Of a DNA stretch of 64,000 nucleotides, positions 8,893-29,686 are shown piece by piece (position 1 is the stretch's first letter; the number at the start of each line of letters is the position of its first letter). The notes under the pieces are model-generated. The model was given only the letters and a program-made list of their open reading frames with translations, was not told the origin of the DNA and did no database searches. The DNA is from Vitrella brassicaformis CCMP3155. Its lineage: Eukaryota; Protista; Chromerida. The stretch covers positions 1-64,000 of the forward strand of contig CDMY01000255.1 of assembly GCA_001179505.1 (NCBI GenBank). The letters run 5' to 3'. A program made the position numbers and the translations under genes.

Positions 8893-9564
8893 AGTGCCAA
8901 CTCTGATGGCATGGATGGATGGATAGCATTTGCCTTCTTGTGGTGAGTGACTTTTTCGGCATTTCGGCCGTCATGAAGAGCGTATACATGTGTCACTCCG
9001 TGCGTGTGGGTGGTTCTCGATTACCGTGGGCAATGGATGCTCGAAGAGATGCGAAGGTTGAGGAGACTTGTTTGTGGTGAAATGGGCATTCACTCATTCA
9101 CAGATGCATCCATACACACACGAGTCATGCTGTCGACACCCAGCGAATGGAACACACATGAGCGCTGCACTCATGTATTTTGCACACACACTAAGTGGGT
9201 GTAGGTGGACAGGCAGTCGACACACCATCGCCCCACACGCACGAAAAAGCAACAGCCAAGAGAGCAATCCGACAGCCGAGCGGACAAGAAGACGTGCAGA
9301 TGAATTGTCAGCCGGCCATCCATCCATCCATCAATCTGTTTTGTGCACCACATGCACTTATCCACTCCAGAAAAGAAGCCATAGCTAGGCTCGGCCCGAC
9401 CGACCCATCTCCCCCTTACTATCGGACCACCCCTCCCTCCTTCCATCAGAGCAGCTGTACACAAGCAGGAGGCCTCACTCAGTCCTCACAGCGAGGGGGC
9501 ATGATATCCGCTACAGCTAGGCCCTCCCTCTCTCCGTCACCCCTGTGTGTGTGGTCGTGTGTGA

Positions 9565-10166
9565 TCAGGGGAATGTTTTCTTGGTCATGATGGTGTAGAA
9601 GTCCTCGAAGGAGATCTCTCCGTCTCCGTTGCTGTCGGCGCGTTCGATCATCTCCCGCAGCTCCTCCTCGGTCATGGTCTCGCCCAGCTCCTTGGCCACC
9701 CTCTTGAGGTTCTTGATCGTGATGGTCCCCGTCTTGTCCTCGTCAAACAGCGCAAATATCTTCTGAATCCCATCACGAGACTCCTTATCACCCTGCATGC
9801 ACGCACCCACCCACACACCACAGGCATCCTTGTCTCATGTGCCGTCCCACACGTACGCGCCTCACTCGGTGTGTGCATGATTATTGTGTGCGGGCGTACG
9901 AGTTTTGCGCAGATGGCGTCCAGGAACTCATCGAAGTCGATGGCGCCGCTGCCGTCCCTGTCGAGGTCTGCTATCATCTGGAAGATGGTGGGGTTCTTGG
10001 TCTCGAAGCCCAGCGACTGCATCGCCGCCTTGAGCTCCTTCGGGTCTATCGTGCCGCTGCCGTCCGTGTCAAACAGGTTGAAGGCCTCACGAATCTCGTC
10101 TATCTCGTCCTCCGTCAGGCCGGGACGCTCGTACGCCAACCGCTTGTTGCGCGTCAGGCGGCTCAT
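9565..10166 (-). CDS. CEN2: Centrin (apicomplexan centrin-2 type), 2 exons (10166-9900, 9792-9565)
   Basis: [48 protein letters not shown]...[17 protein letters not shown]...[26 protein letters not shown]; four EF-hands; clean phase-0 intron. Confidence 0.93.
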
Positions 10167-10585
10167 CGCGACAAATCAACCAACCAACCAGCAAGGGGTC
10201 AAGGGCCAACCACTACACTTCTCGCGCCGCTCTGAAATGCGATGAGAGGCGCTGGAAAGTGGCGATCTCTTTTCTGCCAAGCTCGCAGGGAGGAGGGAAG
10301 GAAAAGAAAAGGGAAAGACGAGCCCGAGGCGTTGGCAGACGCCGCCAGGCCTCATGGCTTCCTTCCTTGTCGGAACTATCCATGAAGTCCACATCTGACC
10401 CTTCGGATGCCTCTCTCGCGACGATGCGGCGGCGAGTCTCGTCGAAGAGGGGCAGCCACTGACGATAGACAGGTAGGGCGAAGGCGAGATGGGAAGGAAA
10501 GGGCATCCCTCATAATGGTTGACAATTTATCCATCTTGTGTGTGCAGGGCGGTTCACGTCGACTGGAGACCAGTGGCTTAAGACG

Positions 10586-13146
10586 ATGTCGAGCACATAC
10601 GACGGAGCCGACCTGACGGCGCGTGTCGATTCGCGTATCAGAGAATACGCAGATTCTGTTCTGCGGGAGCGCGCGGCTTTTGTTCTGCAAGAGTGTCTGA
10701 GGAGCCCGAGAACGGACACAATTACGCAGGGAAAAGCGCAAACACTAGGTAAGGCAGCTAGCCGACAGGTCATTATGGATCTCTAATGGTGGTGGTGCTT
10801 TATGGGCGGGTGGCGCGGTGCAGAGGCATTTCTGGTGCTGGAGGAGATCCCGGATGCCGCTCGTGTTGCGAACGTCATTAGCACAGCTTTGCAGCAGGTC
10901 CCGTCATCTGCAACAGCTGATGCTGGTCCTACTGCGGTGGGTGTGGCTGGCCGAGAAAATCTGGCATGCACACAGATACGACCTGGCATGGTGCTCACTT
11001 GTGTTTGCTTGTTGGCTCGATCAGGGGCAGATGCCGCTATCAGAGAACAAGCTGCTTTGGTCCTGCAAGAGTGTCTGAGGCGCCCGGCAACGGACAGTGC
11101 AATCACGACAGTAGGTAAGCAGCCAGCCGACAGGCCATTATGGATCTCTAGTGGTGGTGGTTGTGTGGGCGGGTGGTGCGGGGCAGGGGCATTGCTGGTG
11201 TTGGAGGAGATCCCGGATGCCGCTCATGTTGCCAACGTCATTAGCACAGCTTTGCAGCAGGTCCCATCATCTGCTCAGGCTGCTGCTGCGGTGGGTGTGA
11301 CTGGCCGAGAAAGAGATACGCACGCAGACATGACATGGAATGATGCTCACTTGTGTGTTTGGGCCTTTTCCTTTCTTGTCAGGCCGCATCAGCATTGTCA
11401 AGTTCAGCAGCTGCCATGCCATCTCAGCCCTTCCCTCTCACGCCATCTCTCCCCACCACCACACCCCACCCATCCGCCCAGGCCCCCGCACTGACTCCCG
11501 TGTCAGTGGCCGACGGTGCAGCTGCAGCTGGGTCAGGGGAGAGGGCGGCAGACACACAGGAGGGGGGAGCAGGGCAGAAGGGAGACGACGGGGCGGAGGA
11601 GGGGGTGCGTGAGGGGCGGTACCGTGACGACCTGTTGGTAGAGTTGTTTGAGGAGCTCAAGATAGCCGACCCGATTCACTACGCGTGGTGTGAGGGGGCT
11701 GATACCTTCACGCGGGTCTACAGTAAGCACCCAGGGGAGGGGCCTGGCTATCACTCTTATGCCCATTTATCGCTTTGTGCCTGTATGTGACTGATTGGCG
11801 TGTCAGGAGCCCTGCATGACGCGAATGTCGCCAATCCGATGAAGGTTCTTCGCATTGTCGGGAGAGCGCTGGCGCAGCAGGTGGGTGGATCAACATGACG
11901 CTTTCATTGCATCGACGACAGGACTGTTGTTTGTGTGACTCGGACAGACGCAGCCCCCGCACTCCCACCGTCCCACCGACCCGTCTGTGTGTGTGTCATC
12001 CGGGCAGCCGGCAGACGGCGCGGGAGCTGTCGGTGACTCTGATGACCACGAGGCCATGCAGTTGGCGAACGATGAGGCCGCTGATCCTGCACCGTCGAGT
12101 CATCCTCCCGCCCCTCCCCTGCCACGGCAGCCGCCTGCGTCTCAGGGAGAGCCGGCAGGTGCGATCAGCCTGGAGGACATGGAGCGCTTCTGGAGGGAAC
12201 AATACACCGCTTTGACGGTATGTCACATGTCATTTGCAACAAGCACCATGTCATCTCCTCGGTTGCCTTTTCTTTGTGGCTGGCTGGTTCGATCAGGGGC
12301 AGATGCGGCCCATCGCACCGCCCAATCCTCAGGTACAGACAGGCAGACAGATAGACAGACAGACAGACGCGCGAATGATGAGGAGAGCACCACATGTTCA
12401 ATGACGTGACGACTGTGTCGCTCGTCAGCATGGTGGTGGCGGTGCTGCTGATGACGACGACGAGGACATGGAGCGCTTTTGCTGGGAACGATACACCGAA
12501 TTGACGGTATGTCACACATGTCCTTTGAATCACCATGTCACTCCTCGGTTGCCTTTTCTTGGTGGCTGGATCAGGGACAGGTGCCGCCCATCGCACCGCT
12601 CAATCCTCAGGTACAGACAGGCAGACAGACAGACAGACAACGTGTATCATGAGAAAGGCACCACATGTTCCATGACACGATGACTGTATTGCTCGTCAGG
12701 CTGGTGGCTGGGCTTCTGCTGCTGTTGCTGCATCGAGCGGGCCTCTGCCAGCAGCATCCACTACAGCTACTCCTGTGGTGGGGACACCTACGCCAGCACA
12801 CAAAGACACCTGGTCTTCGTGGACGGATCGTTCATGCTGTCAGGTCGGGGACTCCTCCGTTCCACCCATGACACTGTTTCCGCCCGGCCGCGTGTTTTTG
12901 GGCCCTCTCCGGCCGCCCCCCTGCCCCTGGCCCTTCGCCCCACCCATGGCCGTCAACCACAACACTCCAGCTCGACCACCGCACATCCCCATGGCGTCGA
13001 TCATGGCGCCTCCTCCTGGCCAGATGATGATGCACCCCTCCGCGGCTGGAGGTGCCCGGATGATGCTCCCGAGTGCCACCCGCACAGGCCAGCAGGCACC
13101 ATCCGTGCAGACGACCGGCGGGGCACCGACGACTGGGAACGGCTAG
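10586..13146 (+). CDS. Multi-exon hypothetical protein built from duplicated exon-intron blocks, Pro-rich tail
   Basis: Repeated exons IRE(x)...AA(F/L)VLQECLR and LVLEEIPDAA(R/H)VANVISTALQQVPSSA (2x each), EDMERF(W/C)..(Q/R)YT.LT (2x); terminal exon ends TTGNG-TAG at 13146. Confidence 0.6.
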
Positions 13147-14273
13147 GCACGACGCACATCGCAGCACAGTAGCGGTGGAGGGAGTAGTAAGGGAGCAGTA
13201 GAGGCAGGTGGGAGAGGGACGGAGGGAGGAGGGAAGGATGGAGACTTCGTTGCCTATGTGTGTGTGTTTTGAGTGTTCATGTCTGTGGGCTGTGTAATCG
13301 ATTGCGGTGTATCCACGCGTACGACAAACGCACTCATCCATCCATCCATGCCCTTCCATGAGCAAGAGCAAGAGAGATAGACAGATGACCGACCCGACGT
13401 GCCGTTCCATTGCCATGCTGTGAGCCAGTCGAGTCATCAGACGTGGTCAAGCAGCCAGCACCCCTGGTGGTCGACCGGCTGCGACTGGTGGCGAGACTGG
13501 ACCACGGATGGCTGGGTGGCGGTATGGTGTGTAGGTGAATTCGCATGGACTAACTCGTGGACCGTGTATGCGGACAGACCAATGTTCGGGCAGTTTTGTC
13601 AATGTCGATACAAACAATATCATATATATAACGAACAGTCCTCTCCCATACGCTGCCCTTGCCCCTGGTGTACAAGACACGCAGTCAGTCCGGCATTCAT
13701 CGACCAGCTATGTGCATCACCGATATGAACAGGCAGAACGAAAAACCAGTCGGTCGGCCGGTCTGTCTCCCGATACTTGCTGCGGCGAGACCATCCGTCC
13801 ATCCATCCGCCTCAAGCGATTACAAACACGGCCTCATCGCCGGGCAGCTGCTAACCTGACGGACAGACGATATCAAGCAAGATGGAGCCACATACGATCA
13901 CACAACGGAGGGAGGGAGGATGGGTGCCGCCGCCGCTTGGTGCATGTATTGTAATGAACTGATGTCAACTGATGTATGGACAGACATGAGTTCACAATTA
14001 AAGCGTGTCCATCCTCATCCATGAGTTGATACGTCATTCGAGCATCCAGTCATGTCACGTATGTCTGTGTGTCTGCGCTGGCTGGCTGTCGTCGTGTCGT
14101 TCACTCTTCTTCTTCCATTGCCATTTCCCTCTCACTCTCCTCTTCTTCTTTCCTGCGTGCCAGCTCATCCTCCGCCTCGTGCTGTGCCAACTTGCCAGCC
14201 TCCAAACCCTGCATGCACACACAGATACACGCAGCCATCCATCCCATCCATCCATCCATCCCAACGAACGATC

Positions 14274-15298
14274 TTAGATAGTTCGTTCACTGACCTCAGT
14301 GTGTGGTCTCTGGCACATCTCTCTCTTGTGTCTCAGCTCAGCCACCTTTGCTTTGGTCTCTGCAGTCTTGGCGGCAATGGACTCCACAGACTCACCAACC
14401 TGCATCCACCCATCCACCCATCGCACACAAACATCCGAGTGTGTGTCGGTATGTGTCGCGTGTCTTGCCTTCTTGGGACATGGTGCAGGCATGGCTGCTG
14501 TCGTGGCAGCTCCCTCCTCGGCCGCCTTGGCAAGCTGAGTGGACACAAGAGACAGGGAGAGACATGTGGATGAGTGCCATGTCTCAGTGTGTTGTCGTCT
14601 GTGTGTGTGTCGTGTTGGCTGACTGCTTCCTCCTCGGCTTTGACGTCCTCTGTCATCGACTTCTTGTCGGCGATGGCGGCTCTGACCTGCTGCACGTCCC
14701 TTGCGGCTGCCGACTGTAGCGAGGCCTCCGTGCCAGACAACTTCGCCGCCATCTCGGATGTCTGCACACAATCGTGACAGAGAGTGATGAGTGTGGTGTG
14801 TGTCTCCGTCCGTCCGTCTGTCCGTCCGTCCGTGTGTGTCACAGTACCTGTGCGTCGAGTTTGGCTGTGTCGCTTGGCGGTGCCTTTGCGGCTCTTACGG
14901 CCTGGCCCGCCTGCTCCTTGGCCGTGTCGAGAGCATGCTGACATCCACACAGAGTCATTCAGTCGTCACACTCATTCAGTGTGTGTGTGTGCGTGTGTGT
15001 GTGTGTGTGTGTGTCATGCATCTACCTTCTGTCGCTCGAGTCTCCTCCCACGGATCTCCTCTACGCTTTTGAGTGTATCGGCCTTCCTCTCTGCCTTGAC
15101 CACCTCTTTCTCGCTCTCGGTCTTGCCCGCCTGGCTGCGGCCCTCTGCGACTCCCTCGCGATAGACGTCGACTGCGTCACGCACGACGCTCGGAGGCGCA
15201 CGGCGGCTGTACATGTGGCGGATGGCGTGACGGTTGCTCAGCGAGTCCACACTGACGGCGAAGAGGAGAGACACCAGCAGGACAGCCTTGAGCATCAT
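14274..15298 (-). CDS. Secreted or surface Ala/Lys/Glu-rich coiled-coil protein, multi-exon
   Basis: Signal-peptide-like MMLKAVLLVSLLFAVSVDS at 15298; further exons TSEMAAKLSGTEASLQSAAARDVQQVRAAIADKK, VGESVESIAAKTAETKAKVAELR; ends VSERTI-TAA. Confidence 0.65.
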
Positions 15299-15961
15299 CT
15301 TGCAGTGAACGAATTGCAGAGAGTGAGTCAACAGACAATCAAACGGACGAGTGACGAATCGAAGAGCGAATCAATCGCGATGTGATGCTCGATCGTTCAT
15401 CAGTACGAGTACGAGTACGGTGAGTTTATACGTGTTGAAGAAGACCCATGTACGCACCAATCAATCAGGAGAGTCTGTCACGCAGGTATGCAAGGAGGGG
15501 ATGACATGAAAAGCTCATGAGAGTGACCAGCTACTTCCGTCTGCCCGTTGTGCATGTGCTGGGTGGGTGTTCGTGTGCCCCGTTTTGTCCTCTCAACCGA
15601 AGCTCAATCACACCCTCGTCAAGAAGGCGGTGTGATTGAAGCTCAAGCAAGAGAACACAACGGAACACGCGGACCACACCCCCCCACACTGATAACCAAA
15701 ACGCACTCCACCAGCGATTAAAACTCATTCATGTAAGCCAGTATTTACATAAGCCAGTATTTACACGAGTCAGCTCACGGAGGTGTGCCCGCACAGCCGT
15801 TGAAAAGTCAGCCAAAAGAAAATGCAGCCCACAGCTCACTCTCACACACACGGGATGCTAGCTGGAAGGAGAGATGGGAGCGAGGCAGACAGACAGGTAG
15901 ATAAAAGCAAAGAGGTGTGTGTACGCGAGCTGTGTGTGGTGGTGGCTGCTCGGCTGGTGGC

Positions 15962-17508
15962 TCAGATGAGGTCGGCCACGTTCATAGGCATCTCGTCTAT
16001 CTGCGTCGAGTAATACTGCTCGATATCACGGAGAATGCGAATGTCGTCATTCTGACCACCACACAAAGCACACACACACACACACACACACATTCGTCAT
16101 GCTGTAAGCATTCTCTCACTCTCTCTCTCTCTTTTTTTTTGTGTGTGTGTGTGTGAATGTGACTGTTACCTTGACGAAGTTGATGGCGACACCCTTCCTG
16201 CCGTATCGGCCGGACCGCCCGATGCGATGGATGTACAGCTCACGATTGTTGGGCAGGTCGTAGTTGATCACCAGCGACACCTGCACACACCCATACGCCC
16301 ATGCGATGAGCAGCGAGGTGGATGACATTCGTGTTGCCGACTGACCTGCTGCACGTCCAGCCCTCTCCCCCAGACGTCCGTAGCTATCAGTACCCTGCAC
16401 TCACACACATGCCGAAGACACAGAGTGGCATTGTGGTCTGCCTGCGTGTGTTGATGGATGATTTATGTACCTGTTAGACCCACTCCTGAACTGGCTCATA
16501 ATTTGCTCCCGCTCCTTCTGCGGCATGTCACCGTGCATCGAACTCACCTGCATCCAGCACACAACAACAGATACAGGCCGATCCTTGTGCTCCCCACCAC
16601 GCACCACGCCTCTCTCCCTCTCTCCCTCCCTCCCTTCGGTAACGAACCGTGAAGTTGGCCTCGCGCATCTTCTGTGCGAGCCAGTCGACCTTGGCCTTGG
16701 TGTTGCAGAAGATGACGGCCTGTGTGATGGTGAGTGTGTCATACAGGTCGGTGAGGGTGTCGAACTTCCACTCCTCGCGCTCGACGGCGACGAAGAACTG
16801 CTTGATGCCCTCGAGGGTGAGCTCATCACGCTTGACCAGCACGCGGAAGGGGTTGTTCATGAACTTGCGGGTCATCTCGAGCACCTCGTGCGGCATGGTG
16901 GCCGACACGAGGATCACCTGAGTGGATGGCGGCAGGTACCGGTAGATGTCGTACACCTGCTCCTTGAACCCGCGGTTGAGCATCTCGTCCGCCTCATCCA
17001 GAATCAGCATCTTGATCCGACGCGTCGTGAAGTGCCGCTCGTTGATCATGTGGAACACGCGGCCAGGTGTGCCCGACACGATGTGCACACCCGCCTCGAG
17101 GGCACGGATGTCGTTGCCGACCGCCTTGCCGCCGACGCAGCAGTGCACCTGGACGTTCATGTAGTCGCCGAGTGCGAGGGCCACCTTCTGGCTCTGCTCC
17201 GCCAACTCGCGCGTGGGTGAGAGGATGAGCACCTGGGGATCCCGCTCGGTCATGGCGATGGTCTGCAGCGCTCCCAGGCAGAAGACGCACGTCTTGCCCG
17301 TCCCCGACTGGCTCTGGACTATGACGTCACGTCCCTTCATGATGGGCACGATGGCGCGCGCCTGCACCGCCGACGGACGCTCGAAGCCGTAGGCGTAGAC
17401 GCCGCGCAGCAGGTCCTCCTTGAGCTCCATGCTGTCGAAGGTGGGGAACACCTGACAGTCCTCGCTCGTCTCAAACACCATCTGCTCATCCGAATCTAGC
17501 GCCGACAT
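15962..17508 (-). CDS. EIF4A3: DEAD-box RNA helicase eIF4AIII (exon junction complex core)
   Basis: Q motif (GFERPSAVQ), [50 protein letters not shown]; ends [19 protein letters not shown]; eIF4A3-specific QSQSGTGKT and [10 protein letters not shown] signatures. Confidence 0.95.
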
Positions 17509-17582
17509 GGTGACTACAGGGACCAACGATGGGCGGGAAGGTAGAGGGGGATAATCAGCGAAAAACACCACCCGGCAGAGCG

Positions 17583-17600
17583 TAGGGTTTGGGGTTAGGG
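17583..17600. promoter_or_regulatory. Telo-box / telomere-like motif in the divergent promoter of eIF4A3 and the smORF array
   Basis: TAGGGTTT (reverse complement AAACCCTA) at 17583-17590 followed by GGGGTTAGGG; about 75 bp upstream of the eIF4A3 ATG. Confidence 0.4.
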
Positions 17601-17633
17601 TCAGGATCGCCAGCTAAGCTCGCAACTGAAAAA

Positions 17634-17780
17634 ATGCTCGACGCTTTGCTCGTGTCCTGGATCAACGTTGGTGTCGTCGTCTACACCGTCTTCGGCATCA
17701 TCGGTTTCATTCAAGATTTCTGCTATCGTGTCCTGCACCGCATTGCTACCGGAGAGTGGGAGTGGGGCCGCTCTCGTTGA
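17634..17780 (+). CDS. smORF A1, 48 aa single-TM peptide
   Basis: MLDALLVSWINVGVVVYTVFGIIGFIQDFCYRVLHRIATGEWEWGRSR; at least 11 synonymous codon differences versus paralogue A2. Confidence 0.75.
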   Translation: MLDALLVSWINVGVVVYTVFGIIGFIQDFCYRVLHRIATGEWEWGRSR

Positions 17781-17884
17781 GCACACAACAGCAGGTACGC
17801 TATGCGTGAGGCCACAAGAGCATCAGTGACCCATTCCGCCTTCGCCCCACGTCAGACTTTGCATCCGACTGAGTGTGAGCGGCA

Positions 17885-18028
17885 ATGTTCTTCTCGCCTT
17901 TCGAGCTCTTCATTGGCTTTGTGATGGTCTTCGATATCACCCTTGGGGTCGGGCTGTTCGCCCACTACTTCCGACTGTTCGCCGGAGGGTGCGGTGGGCC
18001 GCGAAGTGTTATGAACCCCTACAGCTGA
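17885..18028 (+). CDS. smORF B1, 47 aa hydrophobic peptide
   Basis: MFFSPFELFIGFVMVFDITLGVGLFAHYFRLFAGGCGGPRSVMNPYS; CGGP...NPY conserved in B2 and the diverged B3. Confidence 0.7.
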   Translation: MFFSPFELFIGFVMVFDITLGVGLFAHYFRLFAGGCGGPRSVMNPYS

Positions 18029-18100
18029 ACCACACTGTTTCTTCCCAAATCGTGTCTCCGCTTTGCTACCAGCTGTTTGCTACCTCTTCGTCAACCGGGC

Positions 18101-18196
18101 ATGATCCCTCTCCCCCCCCTTGACCCCATCTGGTGGATCAACGCTGGCGTGGTTGTCTACTATATCATCGGCATGATCTCCTTCGTCGAAAAGTGA
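18101..18196 (+). CDS. smORF C1, 31 aa single-TM peptide
   Basis: MIPLPPLDPIWWINAGVVVYYIIGMISFVEK; shares DP(I/L)xWINxG(V/L)V with family A. Confidence 0.65.
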   Translation: MIPLPPLDPIWWINAGVVVYYIIGMISFVEK

Positions 18197-18342
18197 TCCT
18201 GGCGTTCGATCCCCTTTCGTGGATCAACGTTGGTCTCGTGGCCTACCTTCTACTCGGTCTCGTTGCTTTTGTCCAAGATTTCTGCTATCGCGTTGCTCGT
18301 CGGGTTCGAAGAGGCGAATGGCATTGGGGGCGAACTCCCTGA
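18193..18342 (+). CDS. smORF A2, 49 aa; GTG start overlapping the C1 stop (AAGTGA)
   Basis: VILAFDPLSWINVGLVAYLLLGLVAFVQDFCYRVARRVRRGEWHWGRTP; protein-level conservation with A1. Confidence 0.7.
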   Translation: MILAFDPLSWINVGLVAYLLLGLVAFVQDFCYRVARRVRRGEWHWGRTP

Positions 18343-18458
18343 CATGACGCTGAGCACACAACAGCAGGTATGCCTATGCGTGAGGCCACAAGAGCATCAG
18401 TGACGCATTCCGTCTTTGCCCCACTTCAGACTTTGCATCCGACTGAGTGTGAGCGGCA

Positions 18459-18602
18459 ATGTTCTTCTCGCCCTTCGAGCTCATCATTGGCTTTGTGATG
18501 GTCTTCGATATCACCCTTGGGGTCGGTCTGTTCGCCATCTTCTTCCAGGAGTTCGCCAGAGGGTGCGGTGGGCCGCGACGTGCTATCAACCCCTACACTT
18601 GA
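18459..18602 (+). CDS. smORF B2, 47 aa
   Basis: MFFSPFELIIGFVMVFDITLGVGLFAIFFQEFARGCGGPRRAINPYT. Confidence 0.7.
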   Translation: MFFSPFELIIGFVMVFDITLGVGLFAIFFQEFARGCGGPRRAINPYT

Positions 18603-18660
18603 ACCACATGGTTTCTTCCCAAATCGTGTCTCCGCTCTGCTACCTTATCGCCAAACGGGC

Positions 18661-18777
18661 ATGATCCCTCTCCCCCCCTTTGACCCCATCTGGTGGATCA
18701 ACGCTGGCGTGGTCGTCTACTGTATCATCGGCATGATCTCTTTCTTGTCATACCACTGGTGCCGTGAATCTCACTGA
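18661..18777 (+). CDS. smORF C2, 38 aa
   Basis: MIPLPPFDPIWWINAGVVVYCIIGMISFLSYHWCRESH. Confidence 0.65.
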   Translation: MIPLPPFDPIWWINAGVVVYCIIGMISFLSYHWCRESH

Positions 18778-18882
18778 AAAACGGTAAGTCAGACGGGGAG
18801 TGGGGCTGTACACAGAGCACTTACGCCTGTCATTCATGTCCTGTCCCTTGCCACCACAGGTTCTGCGTCATCAGGAGCGACA

Positions 18883-19026
18883 ATGGTGTTCCCGCCGGTG
18901 GACTTCATCACTTTCTGTGTCCAGGCCCTTGTCTGCACCTTCTGGATCTCGTTGTCCATCTGGATGATCCTCAATATCCTCAATATCGGGCAGGAAGACA
19001 CCTCCCGTCTGAGGCTGGCGCTTTAG
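18883..19026 (+). CDS. smORF D, 47 aa single-TM peptide
   Basis: MVFPPVDFITFCVQALVCTFWISLSIWMILNILNIGQEDTSRLRLAL; same size and N-terminal P-x-D pattern as its neighbours; preceded by intron 18784-18859. Confidence 0.55.
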   Translation: MVFPPVDFITFCVQALVCTFWISLSIWMILNILNIGQEDTSRLRLAL

Positions 19027-19095
19027 GAGCCAGTCGCTCAGCCCAACGGCCCCGTTTGCTCTGCTCCTTCTTCCCTTCCCCCATCAAGAGCTCCA

Positions 19096-19242
19096 ATGTT
19101 CTTCCCTTTCGCTGACCTCTATTTCGGATTGGTGCTCGCCTTGAACATCATCCTGTGGGTCGGGTTCGGTGCCTATTACGGCACCATGCTCCACTCATAC
19201 TGTGGTGGCCCGCAAGACATCTCCCTCAACCCCTATGCTTGA
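19096..19242 (+). CDS. smORF B3, 48 aa, diverged B paralogue
   Basis: MFFPFADLYFGLVLALNIILWVGFGAYYGTMLHSYCGGPQDISLNPYA; CGGP and NPY retained through synonymous third-position changes (tgt ggt ggc ccg vs tgc ggt ggg ccg; tat vs tac). Confidence 0.7.
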   Translation: MFFPFADLYFGLVLALNIILWVGFGAYYGTMLHSYCGGPQDISLNPYA

Positions 19243-19313
19243 GCCTGTCCTTCTCAAGCCGTGTCTCTAGTCTGCTACCTTCTCGCCAAGCCGGACTGGT
19301 TCCCCCCCCCCCG

Positions 19314-19613
19314 NNNNNNNNNNNNNNNNNNNNNNNNNNNNNNNNNNNNNNNNNNNNNNNNNNNNNNNNNNNNNNNNNNNNNNNNNNNNNNNNNNNNNNN
19401 NNNNNNNNNNNNNNNNNNNNNNNNNNNNNNNNNNNNNNNNNNNNNNNNNNNNNNNNNNNNNNNNNNNNNNNNNNNNNNNNNNNNNNNNNNNNNNNNNNNN
19501 NNNNNNNNNNNNNNNNNNNNNNNNNNNNNNNNNNNNNNNNNNNNNNNNNNNNNNNNNNNNNNNNNNNNNNNNNNNNNNNNNNNNNNNNNNNNNNNNNNNN
19601 NNNNNNNNNNNNN
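19314..19613. other. Assembly gap (300 N) inside the smORF repeat array
   Basis: Run of N flanked by poly-C tracts that match the start of family C ORFs. Confidence 0.98.
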
Positions 19614-19699
19614 CCCCCCCGACCCCATCTGGTCATCTGGTTGATCAACGCTGGCGTGGTTGTCTACTGTATCATCAGCATCATCTCCTTCGTCGAAAA

Positions 19700-19849
19700 G
19701 TGATCCTGGCGTTCGATCCCCTTTCGTGGATCAACGTTGGTCTCGTGGCCTACCTTGTACTCGGTCTCGTTGCTTTTGTCCAAGATTTCTGCTATCGCGT
19801 TGCTCGTCGGGTTCGAAGAGGCGAATGGCATTGGGGGCGAACTCCCTGA
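19700..19849 (+). CDS. smORF A3, 49 aa; GTG start overlapping the stop of a partial C3 (ends 19703)
   Basis: Near-identical to A2, with the same TTCGTCGAAAAGTGATCCTGGCG junction. Confidence 0.65.
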   Translation: MILAFDPLSWINVGLVAYLVLGLVAFVQDFCYRVARRVRRGEWHWGRTP

Positions 19850-19971
19850 CGTGACGCTGAGCACACAACAGCAGGTATGCCTATGCGTGAGGCCACAAGA
19901 GCATCAGTGACGCATTCCATCTTTGCCCCACTTCAGACTTTGCATCCGACTGAGTGTGAGGTGCAAGTTGA

Positions 19972-20091
19972 ATGTTCTTCTCGCCCTTCGAGCTCATCAT
20001 TGGATTACTGGCGGCGGCCAACGTCTGCCTGTCTATGTGTGGTTGCACCAAGATGCGGTCATTGAGACACGCTGAAGCAGAAGTTGATTAA
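19972..20091 (+). CDS. smORF B4, 39 aa, B-type N-terminus with a different C-terminus
   Basis: MFFSPFELIIGLLAAANVCLSMCGCTKMRSLRHAEAEVD. Confidence 0.5.
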   Translation: MFFSPFELIIGLLAAANVCLSMCGCTKMRSLRHAEAEVD

Positions 20092-20156
20092 GCAGCTGCC
20101 TGGCGTCTCCTGTCGTCCCTTCGGCTCTGGCCCCCCTGACCCCAACCAAAGCCGAG

Positions 20157-20330
20157 ATGATTCTTTTTGCCCCTTGATCCCATCTGGCTGATCAACACTG
20201 GAGTCGTTCTGTTTCTCGTCTCCGCCTTCCTACCCCTCGGAACTTCAGCTGCTTGTCTGCGCCCCGATCAACGCTGATGTCGTGGTCTTTCTCCTCGTCG
20301 GCATGATTCGGTTTTGATACCTTGTTGAGC
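20157..20330 (+). pseudogene. Degenerate C/A-type smORF remnants
   Basis: ATG at 20157, a frameshift in the T-run, then LDPIWLINTGVVLFLVS; a second remnant INADVVVFLLVGMIRF follows. Confidence 0.5.
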
Positions 20331-22619
20331 TTATCTGCCATAACATCGAGGGCGGGGGGTTGGTGCTCGCATCTAGCCGTCCGTGGGCTCCAGGCTGATC
20401 AGCCTGACTCTCATGGTCATGCCGCCGCCCGTCTCATAGCAGTCGGCTCCGCATCCTTCGTGTTGACCCCCATGCTCAACCCAGAGTTCCGGGGAATGAA
20501 ATCGCCTTCACTAAGACATCTCTCGGCAATCGGGCCTTTAGTGAATTCTCTCTGCTCGGTGGAGAAACGACGCCTCTCTCGGCGGAGACTCTCGACAATT
20601 TGCCCGTCTCGCCAACGCCAGCATTGCTGACGGCCACCTGTTCGCTCGAGGCACACCGCAGCAGGAGAGCTGTCTCGGCAAGCCAGCGGGCTGCAGGAGG
20701 CCAGAATTTAGAAGGCCCACACACAGCTGACCATAGAAGCTCAGAGGCACAGCCGGCCAACGATCAAGACGAGCACAGATGCCACTGTCAGTGTGTCTCC
20801 TGGTGATGGCACTTAGGCTGAGGCCAATGGCCAAGACGACTGGGCAGACGTCAACACTGCGCACAATTACCCGGGAGAAACATCACATCGACACCCGTTC
20901 TGAGAGGCTGGCAGAATGCAGGAGCCTGCTCCGACCTGAAGGTCTTCTTTCCTGTCTCGGTGAATGCAGTTCCTCGGTGGCTGATGCCGGCCTCTGATGC
21001 CCCTGACCACTTTTGGGCCTCAGCCGGCCAGTAACTAAGCTGCCCTGCGTTCCGGGCAGCACACTTCAGCGCGAGGGAACTTGTAGGGGAAGTCATGTCT
21101 CGGTGGGTTGCAGGTGAACGAGACACAGTGATCGACAAGCACTCCAGCAGCTGAGTGGGGCACAGCTGCACGCTGCGGCGGCCGGGGCGTACAAGCGGCG
21201 CAGAGGCAGTCGATGAATGGAAAGGGGGCCGGGCAGGGGGGTGGGGGCGGATGGATAGGGAAAGGAAGGGAAAGGCGGATGGATAGGAGGTATTTGTCTC
21301 TTCGCTATATATAGCTGTCCAGCGGGCGGCCGGTGGCTTGATGTGTCTTCACCACACAGCCGCCATGGCGTCTTTGACGTGGGGCCGCCATGTGACAGGC
21401 AGGTATGACGGTAGGGCTTTAGACCGTCACTCAAAGACCTACCGTCATTTCCTTTGACAACAGCGGAGAAGAGGGAAGGGGGTCGATTCCATGTCGTTTG
21501 TGACGTAATCCAAGTATTGGCGCCGCCCTTTTTTACGTTGTCAGTGCGGCACCGCCATATCTTTTTCTGTGTTTGTCGAAGGGTTACCTGAAGCTGGCTG
21601 CGGTTCTGTATGTCGTGACCAACACTTGTTCACTCCTTCTTTTTGGTGGTCATCGGCTGGTTTCTCCTTTTCTTGTCGGCTGAGGTGGGCGGGAGAGGTT
21701 GTGTGGACCTTCTCATGGATGTAGGATGTGCCTGCCTTGCTCCTTAAGCCTTGTCTACGAACTCTTTTTAGGCGCATTGATCTTAGAGAAGAGGGTACAA
21801 AGACGTGCACAATTTGCTCTCTGTGCCGGCTGACAGATGGATACGCGCGTGAATGTACAGTATCGGCATGCGCTCTTTTTCTCTTTTCTCGGTGGCAGCT
21901 GGTTCTCTACGATGCAGTTGTTCTTTTCGCCTTGTCACTTTTGACTCACACATCAATTCAGGGATATGTGTGTGTGATTTAAGCGATGTGTCTGTGGCGT
22001 TAAAGCAGTCGTGTGTGACCGGCAGAACTCGGTTGAGACATGGAATGAAAAAGACGACATGACGTTTTAAGGCACTCAAAGGGGCTTCGCATTCGTCTCT
22101 CATTAGTGCTGAATGTCTGGGTCTCTCATCCCTGCAATCCGTCGCCACCAGCGTGGACATGTACACAAATGCATATGGGTCACATCAAGGCGACCGACGC
22201 CCCAAGGCCCAAAACCGCATACGTCCTCTCTACGTCCTAATGCAATGAAGGCTATGCTACACTCGCGCACACACCCTGAACATCTATCTCTCTATCGATG
22301 ATGCATGCACAGCATCAAGACACGTCGACGAACACCATCCGCAAAGAACGGCCGTACATGTGGACAACTCGCACGTACTAGGAAGTCACATACATCAGGA
22401 ACACACACGTGTATGCATTCATGCAATCTCTCGACAAAAACGGCCATAAGACATACGTGGGTGCGTGAGCGAAAGAGTGTGAGACAGCGCGCATGTATCA
22501 ATATGCCGCCATATGTATATTCCAAGACTCAGCAGGAGGTAAACAGATACACACATGTGTCAGACGTATATATACACACACAGTATGGTGCTTACTCATA
22601 TGGACGGACAAATACACAT

Positions 22620-24160
22620 GTCAAGTACGTACGTACATATACGTGAGCAGGACACACACAGTGGCCCACTTGTCTGTGTGTCACCCACCCACACATCCAC
22701 CCACTGTCCCACCCACGCAAAACACCGCAATGTCTCAGGCGCTGACGTCCATCTCGTGCCTGTTGCTCTGCTCCTACTCCTCGCAGCATGGTGACGGGTC
22801 AAGGCCGCACAACGCCTGGAACACACACAGGAATACACAATGAACATGAGTGCTAATTGTTTGCTGTTTAATTTCTCACCCTGGAATGTACGCAGAGGGT
22901 CAGCACAGCACACATGCACACATGCGCAGGCATACACAGCGAATGCATGCGCACGTGTTTGCGTTTGCGCCTTGTCTCCACTGACCCTGGGGAGCCCATG
23001 ATCCCGCACACCCATACCACTAACATGAACCCTGTATACATTACATGAATGACACGACATGAAAGCATCGCCTCCACCCGATGAGCTGTATGCGTACCCA
23101 TGGCGAAATACACACCGCCGTAGCTGCCGAATTCCACGTTCTCATGGAACGCCGCGAATCCTGTAGCACCGACAAACCCCACGATGTGTGCGTTGGGTGA
23201 ATCGGCATCCTGCACGTACCGCCCAGAGTTGAGTAGAAGCACTGAGCAGCGTAGAACGACGGAACGGCCACATTGGCCTTTCCGGAGTTCATGGCCATAG
23301 AAAGGAACATCGCCTGACCAACCAGGTCCAGATAAACGGCCATAACAATGTGTGTGTGGTGTGTGCCAGGCAGGTGCCGACTTGAAAGAGCCCGCAAACG
23401 GGAAGTGAAAGACATGTGGCGACCGCAGGGCCCCACAGCAGGACCTCTTGCTGGACACACAGACAAACAGACAGACAGGCACTCACAAAGGACACGCATG
23501 TGATATGGGGTTGTGAGCGATACATACCTTGCCGTACAGAATGAGCTGCTTCATCAGCAGCGGTGCCTGTGAGCCGATAATGCCACCCAGGACGCCGTAC
23601 AGGAGTGCTGACACACACACAGCACGCACAGATTTGTCGCCCTACTTGTGATGGACGCTCCACCTACTGATCCAGTCTCCTGCATCGTCCTCTGGGCTGT
23701 CAGGCTGCTGCTCGACGTCGTCTTTTTCGGCATCCAGGATGGGTTCCAATTCCCGCGGCGAACTCTCCTCCCTGTTGACAGGACAATCAGTCTCTGGAGA
23801 GGTCGCGCTGATGGCTATGTCATGCACCCACCCCTGTGTGTCCTGGCCCTCATTGTGGTTCTCTCTGTCCTGGCCAAAGCAAGACCTACAGCACTGGCCA
23901 AACCACGACCTACAGCACACAACAGAGAAGGATGAATGTGTGGATCGTTTGATGCCGTGTACGCACCAGAAGGCTGCGAATCGTTCAAGCATCTGGCCAT
24001 CGATGTACCAGAGGGACACTATGCACACCCCGGCGGAGGCGACCCAAAGGAGCATGTACATCAGGTACCACCAGCTTGGAGCGGGCAGAAAGATGCTCTC
24101 TCCCAGTTCCTGACAGAACGAAGACACGCACGACGACACGCACGGAGCAGGGGCAGTGTG

Positions 24161-24197
<37 letters not shown>

Positions 24198-24199
24198 TG

Positions 24200-24230
<31 letters not shown>

Positions 24231-24775
24231 TGTGTTTTGTGTGCGCGTGTGTGAGCGGCTGCTTGCCTTCTTCTTGTGGCTGACGCTTGATCGCATCACG
24301 CCTGTGCACACGAATATCCCGAAAGCGATGATGCAGGTAGAACACCATTCCCGCCCGGTACACCGCTCCTTGTTGCAACACTGGAGAGACAAGCACCACT
24401 TCACGTGGCCGGTATGGGCGCTCACCCACCCACCCACTCACTCACCCAGGAAACGATTGCATTGATGAGGAGCGCCAGGACGGCCCAGGGGGCCAAGAGG
24501 GAGGCCGCCGCAAAGTCAAGCGCATACCAGTGGATGAAGGCTCCGCCGACTTGGACAACAAGTCCACACCACCAAATCGCATGCTCGGGCGTGCGGCCTT
24601 TCTGCATTTGCATGCCAATGCAGCCGACTGCATTGGCAGTGACGGTTAAGCCAATTCCGAGGGCGAGGTCCGTCCGGTGGGCCCAGTGGGAGAGGCACAA
24701 AGGGCCGCCTGCGCCAGCTGTGAGCCACACGAAGGCCAGAAGGACGGCGGCCTGGTGTATCTTCTGCATCTGCAT
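22620..24775 (-). CDS. NIPA/DUF803-like magnesium transporter (drug/metabolite transporter fold), multi-exon; both ends approximate
   Basis: LALGIGLTVTANAVGCIGMQMQKG...WWCGLVVQVGGAFIHWYALDFAAASLLAPWAVLALLINAI (NIPA N-terminal pattern); later AMNSGKANVAVPSFYAAQCFYSTLGG. Confidence 0.65.
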
Positions 24776-25258
24776 GGCCAAGCAGCAAGGAGAAGCGCGT
24801 CTGTGTGTGTACATGTGTGATGTGGCTGCCCTACTTGTCGCCGTAGGTCGTGGGCAGTGCTCAGCAACAGGCAGGGGCCTCGCAGGTCGTGGACTCTCCT
24901 CTGAGGCTCTCAGATCTAACCTCAGATCTCCCGTCGATGAGAGGGATATGCCGGAGGCGTGCGTGTGCAGCAGAGTGTGGCACTCAGTGTGCAGACGATG
25001 CTGCAGGGAACCACAGCGCTGCCACTCTCACTCAATACGCGGAGAGTGGAAAAAGTGGGAAAGCACGCTGCACGGCGGCACTGGCAACTCAGACGAGAGA
25101 CTCTGAATCCCCGGCTAACGTTTTGTATTTTGTCATTTTGCGTCTAATTTGTCGTGAGGGCCCGTTCATGACAAGCACGGACATGCATGCGTGAATGTGT
25201 CGTTCACGAAGTACACACGGAGACGGCGGGGCTGTGCTTCAGTTGCCAGTGCGTTCTC

Positions 25259-29686
<4,428 letters not shown>

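Follow-up and report, generated by a model that had tools for sequence, protein, structure and literature searches.

A stretch of 64,000 nucleotides from Vitrella brassicaformis CCMP3155 (assembly GCA_001179505.1, positions 1 to 64,000 of contig CDMY01000255.1, hereafter the window) contains, at about 17634-20320, a head-to-tail array of short open reading frames (ORFs) that occupies about 2.7 kb of the + strand. V. brassicaformis is a photosynthetic chromerid related to apicomplexans. Based on the current evidence, the array is likely to be a lineage-specific cluster of genuine protein-coding small ORFs (smORFs) in the nuclear genome, which would be translated serially and whose A and B peptides may pair with one another. 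The probability of this reading is put at about 0.65. An initial inspection of the DNA (the sequence-only reading) had proposed an undescribed family of micropeptides with a single transmembrane (TM) helix, encoded by a multi-ORF array and not by the exons of one coding sequence (CDS). The core of that proposal is upheld by the ratios of non-synonymous to synonymous substitution (dN/dS), a reading-frame control, a second array, RNA contigs and the hydrophobicity of the peptides.

The array comprises about a dozen frames of 31-50 codons in the order A1-B1-C1-A2-B2-C2-D-B3-gap-C3-A3-B4-remnants, and every ORF named in the sequence-only reading was found on the + strand where it had been placed. 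A1 (17634-17780; 48 amino acids, aa; family A; Kyte-Doolittle score 2.16) starts with ATG and is followed by B1 (17885-18028; 47 aa; family B) and C1 (18101-18196; 31 aa; family C). A2 (18193-18342; 49 codons) has no ATG; its only candidate start is a GTG that overlaps the C1 stop as GTGA, in frame -1 relative to C1. Next are B2 (18459-18602; 47 aa), whose DNA is 89% identical to that of B1, C2 (18661-18777; 38 aa) and D (18883-19026; 47 aa), whose N-terminus MVFPPVDF ties it to the B'/D' ORFs of a second locus. B3 (19096-19242; 48 aa) is an old B paralogue with one in-frame 3-nt indel. Beyond the gap, C3 (19621-19703) is a degenerate C copy with a disrupted 5' end, in which CTG replaces ATG, 8 nt are duplicated and four non-synonymous changes separate it from C1. 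A3 (19700-19849; 49 codons) differs from A2 by one residue and likewise has only a GTG. B4 (19972-20091; 39 aa) is B-like over its first ~11 residues and diverged thereafter, and is likely decaying. The array ends in two broken C-like remnants (20158-20317), where a frameshift follows MILFAP and its stop, and then INADVVVFLLVGMIRF runs to another stop. An in-frame TGA lies zero to two codons 5' of the ATGs of B1, B2 and B4, namely two codons before that of B1 and directly before that of B4. The initial count of about 10 coding genes was an overstatement: the ORFs exist, but only seven are intact with an ATG, or eight if the diverged B4 is included. The distal units C3, B4 and C4 have the sequence features of decaying, pseudogene-like copies, and A2 and A3 may be dead copies as well. 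A tblastn search of the remaining 61 kb of the window returned no additional array copies.

The peptides fall into families with a common membrane design. Family A peptides (~48-51 aa) have an N-terminal TM helix and a QDFCYRV..GEWxWGR tail, with D3, the Asn or Asp of WINVG/LIDIG, a Gly, a Tyr, QDFC.RV and GE(W/Y).W conserved. Family C is a copy of the 5' half of A, with the TM segment (DPIWWINAGVVVY) but not the A tail, and it was found only in the window array. Family B peptides are characterized by MFFSPFE, a TM helix with a mid-helix Asp, CGGP, and NPY before the stop; across B and D (~47-50 aa), the conserved elements are M.F(P/S)P, a mid-helix Asp, Glu or Asn, C(G/S)(G/E)P, and (N/S/D)P(Y/W/R) near the stop. 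The A and B/D families thus both have a short acidic N-terminus, a predicted TM helix of ~20 residues, a polar residue in or near the helix and a short conserved tail. Each also has one conserved juxtamembrane Cys, in DFC in family A and in CGGP/CSEP in B/D. The proposal that these are single-TM peptides is well supported, as every peptide has a single hydrophobic 19-residue segment (Kyte-Doolittle mean 1.7-2.5) that starts at residues 4-15, and the AlphaFold2 model of A'2, a family A peptide of the second locus, is one helix (residues 4-37; mean pLDDT 82).

The comparison of paralogues indicates that the ORFs are under purifying selection at the peptide level in the older pairs. By the NG86 method, dN/dS was 0.26 for A1-A2 (Fisher p 5e-4), 0.22 for A1-A'2 (p 1e-4), 0.30 for A1-A'1 (p 0.002), 0.22 for A2-A'1 (p 0.002), 0.30 for A2-A'2 (p 0.005), 0.40 for B1-B3 (p 0.014), 0.34 for B'2-D'1 (p 0.004) and 0.37 for B'2-D'3 (p 0.008); these pairs are mutually non-independent. 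The older, informative A and B pairs therefore span 0.22-0.40. The many synonymous changes first noticed between A1 and A2 amount to 22 synonymous and 29 non-synonymous differences, and the third codon position has changed most (16, 10 and 25 differences at positions 1, 2 and 3). The observation that B3 retains CGGP and NPY through synonymous changes, while other frames contain stops, also held. In the frame control, the ORF frame had the lowest pN/pS (the corresponding ratio of proportions of differences) of the six frames in 7/7 pairs and was the only frame free of stops in every pair; the other five frames of the same alignments gave ~0.5-1.9 and contained stops. When the observed number of substitutions was placed at random, the ATG and the open frame were retained in 2-9% of simulations per pair. 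Indels within ORFs are multiples of three, compared with 1, 6, 11 and 14 nt in the spacers. The codon composition is characterized by T at position 2 (0.43) and by GC of 0.74 and A of 0.07 at position 3. For comparison, the exon of the neighbouring gene eIF4A3 has GC of 0.90 and A of 0.04 at position 3, and the spacers have GC of 0.58 and A of 0.20. C3, B4 and C4, which have lost the start, the frame or the C-terminal half, serve as an internal control and show how quickly unconstrained copies degrade. Overall, it is very probable that the intact ORFs are coding.

A second array provides further evidence for this conclusion. When 1.84 billion proteins were searched with a hidden Markov model (HMM) of family A, one match was credible: CEM02014.1 (P0002; E 5e-9), a 71-aa 'unnamed protein product' of Vitrella that is encoded near one end of contig CDMY01000316.1 (L001). 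Three other matches (P0001, P0003 and P0004) were rejected on inspection as repeat or low-complexity coincidences. L001 contains a same-strand array of alternating A-like and B/D-like ORFs: A'1 (9296-9451), which is followed by a 300-N gap, D'1 (9870-10022), A'2 (10064-10216), B'2 (10342-10494), D'3 (10603-10755) and a remnant from 10862. Like the window array, it starts downstream of a divergently oriented gene. The similarity between the two arrays is confined to the ORFs, and the spacers cannot be aligned. B'2 combines a D-like MVFPPVGF with a B-like CGGP, and the B peptides of the window match the B'/D' peptides of L001 in HHalign (probability 93%; E 2.7e-7), so that B and D belong in one superfamily. 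The D peptide of the window has only its first 12 residues in common with this superfamily (HHalign 80% over residues 1-12). The ancestral design was therefore an alternation of A-type and B/D-type ORFs.

Transcription of the array is documented by contigs of run X1, which is identified as RNA because its eIF4A3 contig has the introns removed. Record 2 of this run (430 nt) is colinear with 18015-18364, a segment that takes in the last B1 codons, the spacer behind them, C1 and A2, stop codons included, and is then joined as GT..AG to 19934-20013 at the start of B4. With the joint moved by +3, the donor lies at 18368 and the acceptor ends at 19936. Among the 98% identical copies of this region, record 2 matches the C1-A2 copy at five of the six distinguishing positions, and the sixth, 18344, is polymorphic in DNA. 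The joint is thus either an exon-skipping splice of 1569 nt or a 62-nt intron on a haplotype that lacks 1507 bp, and such a shortened haplotype could stem from unequal crossing-over between the 98% repeats. Under either interpretation, several ORFs are present on one processed RNA from which a spacer intron has been excised. Record 3 covers 18993-19312 (the end of D, and B3). Based on this partial coverage, the whole array is likely transcribed as one unit, and a multi-ORF transcript is probable. Additionally, continuous unspliced X1 coverage at a similarly low depth extends over 20042-20900, at least 600 nt past the last ORF remnant. This region contains no convincing ORF, and no gene is annotated until 22774. 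Its RNA may be a long 3' untranslated region (UTR) or a separate transcript.

The introns are placed in the spacers between ORFs and not within the ORFs. The A2-B2 intron (18368-18429, + strand; 62 nt, GT..AG) has a donor that is used in the RNA, and the A3-B4 intron (19875-19936, +; 62 nt, GT..AG) has an acceptor that is used. The A1-B1 intron (17795-17855, +; 61 nt, GT..AG) is predicted by homology, being ~94% identical to the intron removed from the RNA, and a candidate intron of 76 nt between C2 and D (18784-18859, +; GTAAGT..CAG), which is outside the RNA contigs, uses the acceptor of an annotated gene model. An intronic snoRNA or other structured spacer was considered and dropped, as Rfam returned no match. 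A further possibility is that the ORFs are coding but reside on separate short monocistronic mRNAs, each with its own start or set free at the spacer acceptors through processing or trans-splicing. The X1 contigs are fragmentary and cover about two and a half ORFs at most, and each A-B and C-D spacer has a 3' splice site just before the next ATG. The transcript as a whole also lacks the depletion of ATG that leaky scanning would need. However, a single spliced contig connects the end of B1 with C1, A2 and the beginning of a B ORF. The spacer acceptors each have a good cis donor 61-76 nt before them, and nothing resembling an acceptor occurs in the B-C or D-B spacers. The RNA contains a cis-spliced product at the A-B spacer, and no leader-like loose ends were reported among the contigs of this one run; the literature yielded no spliced-leader trans-splicing for Vitrella nuclear genes. 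Separate monocistronic mRNAs are considered very unlikely. Record 2, from a single low-depth run, shows at least two ORFs shorter than 100 codons together on a mature transcript, as expected of a polycistronic smORF locus.

The gene models in the reference annotation raise the question of whether the smORFs are instead exons, or parts of exons, of one or a few larger spliced CDSs. The 78-aa CEL97210.1 (P0005), whose locus (L002) is identical at every position to window 12498-25026, has exactly this form. It is a chimera of B2 codons 14-37 (18498-18567) and 18860-19026, which makes D its second exon, joined across a 292-nt GT..AG intron (18568-18859) with a weak GTGGGC donor. In this interpretation, CGGP/CSEP would encode a splice donor (G|GTGGGC or A|GTGAGC). 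Indeed, the frame of D stays open upstream as far as the acceptor at 18860, and a GT is found in the Cys-Gly/Ser codons of B1, B2, B3, D'1 and D'3. B'2, in contrast, carries GC at the equivalent site, and a far better donor, the GTAAGT at 18784, serves the same acceptor while keeping B2, C2 and D separate. The tail past the putative donor (NPY-stop or xPWExTPF-stop) and the position of the stop are kept in old paralogues whose spacers cannot be aligned, and TGAs stand in frame just before the ATGs of B1, B2 and B4. Moreover, where the sequence-only reading had named exons of one larger CDS as the case that would overturn it, the RNA contig instead runs colinearly through the stops of B1, C1 and A2 and is spliced only at the spacer intron; the B2-D junction itself lies outside the RNA coverage. 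The L001 spacers were examined and have no convincing introns. A larger spliced CDS is accordingly improbable. CEM02014.1 (L001 10001-10216) has its annotated start at an out-of-frame ATG within the D'1 ORF, and the conserved MLD start at L001 10064 is 21 codons downstream of it. Both models thus appear to be wrong. No other database protein was found to be related to the peptides, and each array accounts for one of the two. The array was therefore only partly invisible to ORF calling, CEL97210.1 being the exception in this locus, and 'undescribed' holds in that no relative of the family was found beyond Vitrella but must be qualified by these two mis-modelled representatives in the Vitrella proteome.

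The DNA of the array is a mosaic of duplications of a ~574-bp unit. Positions 17800-18070 match 18374-18644 at 92%, and 18127-18426 match 19634-19933 at 98%, while the DNA of A1 and A2 is only 65% identical. Tandem Repeats Finder reported no tandem repeat in the array, to whose repeats it is blind because their period exceeds 500. These comparisons indicate that the array has grown by segmental duplications of differing ages and that its distal end is decaying. The poly-C run and 300-N scaffolding gap at 19302-19620 are an assembly artefact. C11-G closes the left flank and C7-G opens the right one, and contigs from three DNA runs (X2, X3 and X4) join 19305 directly to 19614, with 8 C fitting either side. 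Since short-read DNA contigs bridge the gap, the 300 N represent an unmerged poly-C overlap, and the unit count that the sequence-only reading had left dependent on it has no unit missing. The frame in which C3 is entered from the B3 spacer is uncertain because the length of the C run is unreliable. Given a run of 11 C, C3 would share the frame of B3 and be separated from it only by the B3 TGA, with no intervening ATG (window 19240-19703). The gap at the second locus (L001 9461-9777) likewise consists of 300 N abutting a C homopolymer, and gaps next to poly-C in this assembly may generally be of zero length. An error in the homopolymer at GAAAAG would mean that C and A are fused, but this was discarded since both DNA and RNA contigs match the assembly there and show no indel.

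Several observations weigh against a cluster of serially translated coding smORFs. The informative pairs are near saturation at synonymous sites (pS, the proportion of synonymous differences, 0.6-0.7), and the recent pairs A2-A3 (0 synonymous and 1 non-synonymous difference) and C1-C2 (2 and 2) are uninformative. B1-B2, with 4 synonymous and 12 non-synonymous differences, has a non-significant dN/dS of 0.90 and looks neutral, and the description of the family as diversifying was not borne out. The A-B spacer of units 1, 2 and 4 is ~94% conserved, compared with 65% for the A1-A2 ORF; this can be put down to the mosaic of duplication ages, although that explanation is unproven. A2 and A3 lack an ATG, and the pyrimidine richness of the + strand would on its own make open, hydrophobic frames more likely. 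The array RNA comes from low-depth contigs of one run (depth 5-9, compared with 48 for eIF4A3), which leave A1, most of B1, B2, C2 and the start of D uncovered, and the spliced joint skips 1569 nt with five ORFs, through either exon skipping or a shorter haplotype. The transcript is not depleted of ATG as a whole. No homologue was found outside Vitrella by family libraries, a structure-feature search, an HMM search or a metagenome scan. Finally, translation of the array is something we infer from its sequence, and the idea that A pairs with B is wholly inferential.

Some of these points would also be expected if the array were a tandem-repeat long non-coding RNA, or a long UTR-like transcript, in which the ORFs are by-products of pyrimidine-rich duplicated sequence and encode no functional peptides. 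The C+T-rich strand (GC skew -0.14, AT skew -0.24) gives fewer stops and more hydrophobic codons, and many overlapping ORFs of similar length occur in other frames. In addition to the neutral appearance of B1-B2, the spacer and its intron are conserved as much as or more than the ORFs among recent units, RNA coverage continues for ~900 nt past the last ORF with no obvious CDS, and none of the protein family libraries returned a match to the peptides. However, the older pairs have a significant synonymous excess in the ORF frame only, ATG, stop and in-frame indels are conserved, and the composition by codon position resembles that of a bona fide gene. Moreover, only the ORFs can be aligned between the two loci, and the array has neither an Rfam match nor a folding signal. 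A non-coding origin for the ORFs is therefore unlikely, and coding smORFs on a common transcript are the preferred interpretation.

The array lies next to a promoter region common with eIF4A3 and is transcribed into a spliced multi-ORF RNA. If the ORFs are coding, ribosomes would translate them serially by termination and reinitiation. Leaky scanning was rejected as a general mechanism on account of the ATG content of the transcript. Serial reinitiation fits better with the short ORFs, the ATG-poor spacers and the purines at -3. The spliced spacers contain 2 ATG where 6.2 are expected (P 0.045), and 11/13 starts have a purine at -3 (P 0.003, the starts being not fully independent). At both loci, pyrimidines make up 64-70% of the spacers that have no intron. 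At the C-A overlap, reinitiation from stop to start at the GUG of the GTGA would give A2 or A3 alone, while slippage of tRNA-Lys on A-AAG before UGA would give a two-helix C-A fusion. The RNA fold downstream of the GUGA overlap (z -0.48) lends no support to a frameshift stimulator, and the two GTGA occurrences are non-independent because they are in 98% copies.

With regard to function, the A-type and B-type peptides might be produced together and pair in the membrane through their intramembrane polar residues, their conserved Cys or both. Such polar residues and a single juxtamembrane Cys are expected of partners in membrane-helix association. The paired peptides could constitute a small hetero-oligomeric membrane complex, or they could regulate some larger membrane protein. 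The proposal of serial reinitiation and of A-B pairing is tentative. More doubtful is its fullest form, a nuclear 'micro-operon' in which serial reinitiation, including the GUGA overlap or a -1 slip, would supply A and B/D in fixed proportion to a lineage-specific hetero-oligomeric membrane complex whose components co-evolve.

The searches for known relatives of the peptides were otherwise negative. The exact peptides are absent from a collection of 15 billion proteins, B1 alone as a query retrieved no homologue, and the ESM Atlas contained no meaningful neighbours. In a JGI metagenome scan, 0 of the 259 pattern matches were confirmed by tblastn. Pfam matches to Otopetrin, PsbL, PsbT, holin and Lysis_col (E 0.06-0.3) were rejected as chance-level; those to PsbT (E 0.14; 12.4 bits vs a gathering threshold of 22.4) and PsbL (E 0.12; 12.8 vs 33) are chance hydrophobic matches.

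In its organization, the array looks like a polycistronic smORF locus. The smORF genes tarsal-less/polished rice (tal/pri) and sarcolamban of Drosophila likewise carry several paralogous ORFs of <100 codons on one transcript formerly thought to be non-coding (PMC11475943; PMC4612599). As in the Vitrella array, their ORFs are conserved while the spacers drift, and the sarcolamban peptides are also single-pass membrane helices. The Vitrella array shows the peptide-level conservation that marks such loci in its dN/dS, its frame control and the restriction of similarity between loci to the ORFs. However, it has no sequence similarity to the Drosophila genes, as judged from Pfam, the Atlas and the HMM search. 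Its ORFs are longer than those of tal (11 aa) and more numerous (~12), and it differs in its two alternating families, its spacer introns, its chromerid host and in that its translation is presumptive. The peptides also differ from the sarcolamban/phospholamban type, in which the helix is C-terminal. The Vitrella peptides instead have an N-terminal TM helix and, after it, a C-terminal tail of 15-25 residues, and no match to the phospholamban or sarcolipin families was obtained. The new points are therefore the alternating families, the dozen or so units, the spacer introns and the host.

Two further comparisons come from microbial eukaryotes. Dinoflagellates, which are alveolates like Vitrella, have same-strand, head-to-tail arrays of paralogous genes that are co-transcribed and resolved by spliced-leader trans-splicing. 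To our knowledge, no spliced leader is known from Vitrella. The Vitrella units, in contrast to those of dinoflagellates, are heterogeneous (A/B/C/D) and tiny, their acceptors have cis donors and a cis-spliced product was found; the context of dinoflagellate tandem arrays is given elsewhere (PMC7789003). Nuclear polycistronic mRNAs have been described from green algae (PMC7896298), where the mechanism is leaky scanning (PMC11291117), and from the apicomplexan Cryptosporidium parvum (PMC11761812). These transcripts resemble the Vitrella array in carrying more than one conserved ORF, of which the first is often small. However, they mostly hold two or three unrelated full-size ORFs, whereas the Vitrella array holds about a dozen paralogous micro-ORFs in tandem, and the signature of leaky scanning, the depletion of ATG in upstream ORFs, was not seen in it. 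For Vitrella itself, the literature on polycistrons was limited to organellar ones.

The divergent neighbour of the array had been named as eIF4A3, and this was confirmed. The first large exon (16646-17508, - strand) matches human eIF4A-III with an E of 1.9e-138, compared with 3e-109 for eIF4A-I, and its ATG at 17508 is 125 nt from that of A1. The interval of ~125 nt contains a telomere-like repeat run (TAGGGTTTGGGGTTAGGGTCAGG) at 17583-17607, which may be a telo-box-like promoter element and has a variant form on the other haplotype, seen as a loose end of an X1 contig. A second haplotype or near-identical copy, ~2% divergent with ~20 substitutions and small indels, covers 16482-17546 over the eIF4A3 exon. 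This form occurs in RNA run X1 and DNA runs X3 and X4, while X2, from the same sample as X3, has the reference form. Elsewhere in the window, 22000-24500 and 25500-29400 are rich in CA/TG-type microsatellites (HTHTHT runs in translation), and an MCM-like gene on the minus strand was recognized by a motif in the ORF at 26741-27448.

If confirmed, this would be the first polycistronic smORF array known to us from a chromerid, and it would extend the range of eukaryotic polycistronic translation beside the cases from Cryptosporidium and green algae. The Cryptosporidium case places polycistrons within the wider lineage of Vitrella. Small-ORF genes are systematically missed in protist genomes, and here two genes of the reference annotation are exposed as apparently mis-modelled, with two orphan families of putative membrane micropeptides in alternating arrays at no fewer than two loci. 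With its ~10 ORFs, its stop-start overlaps and its decaying copies, the locus would offer a natural system for the study of reinitiation and of the birth and death of micropeptide genes.

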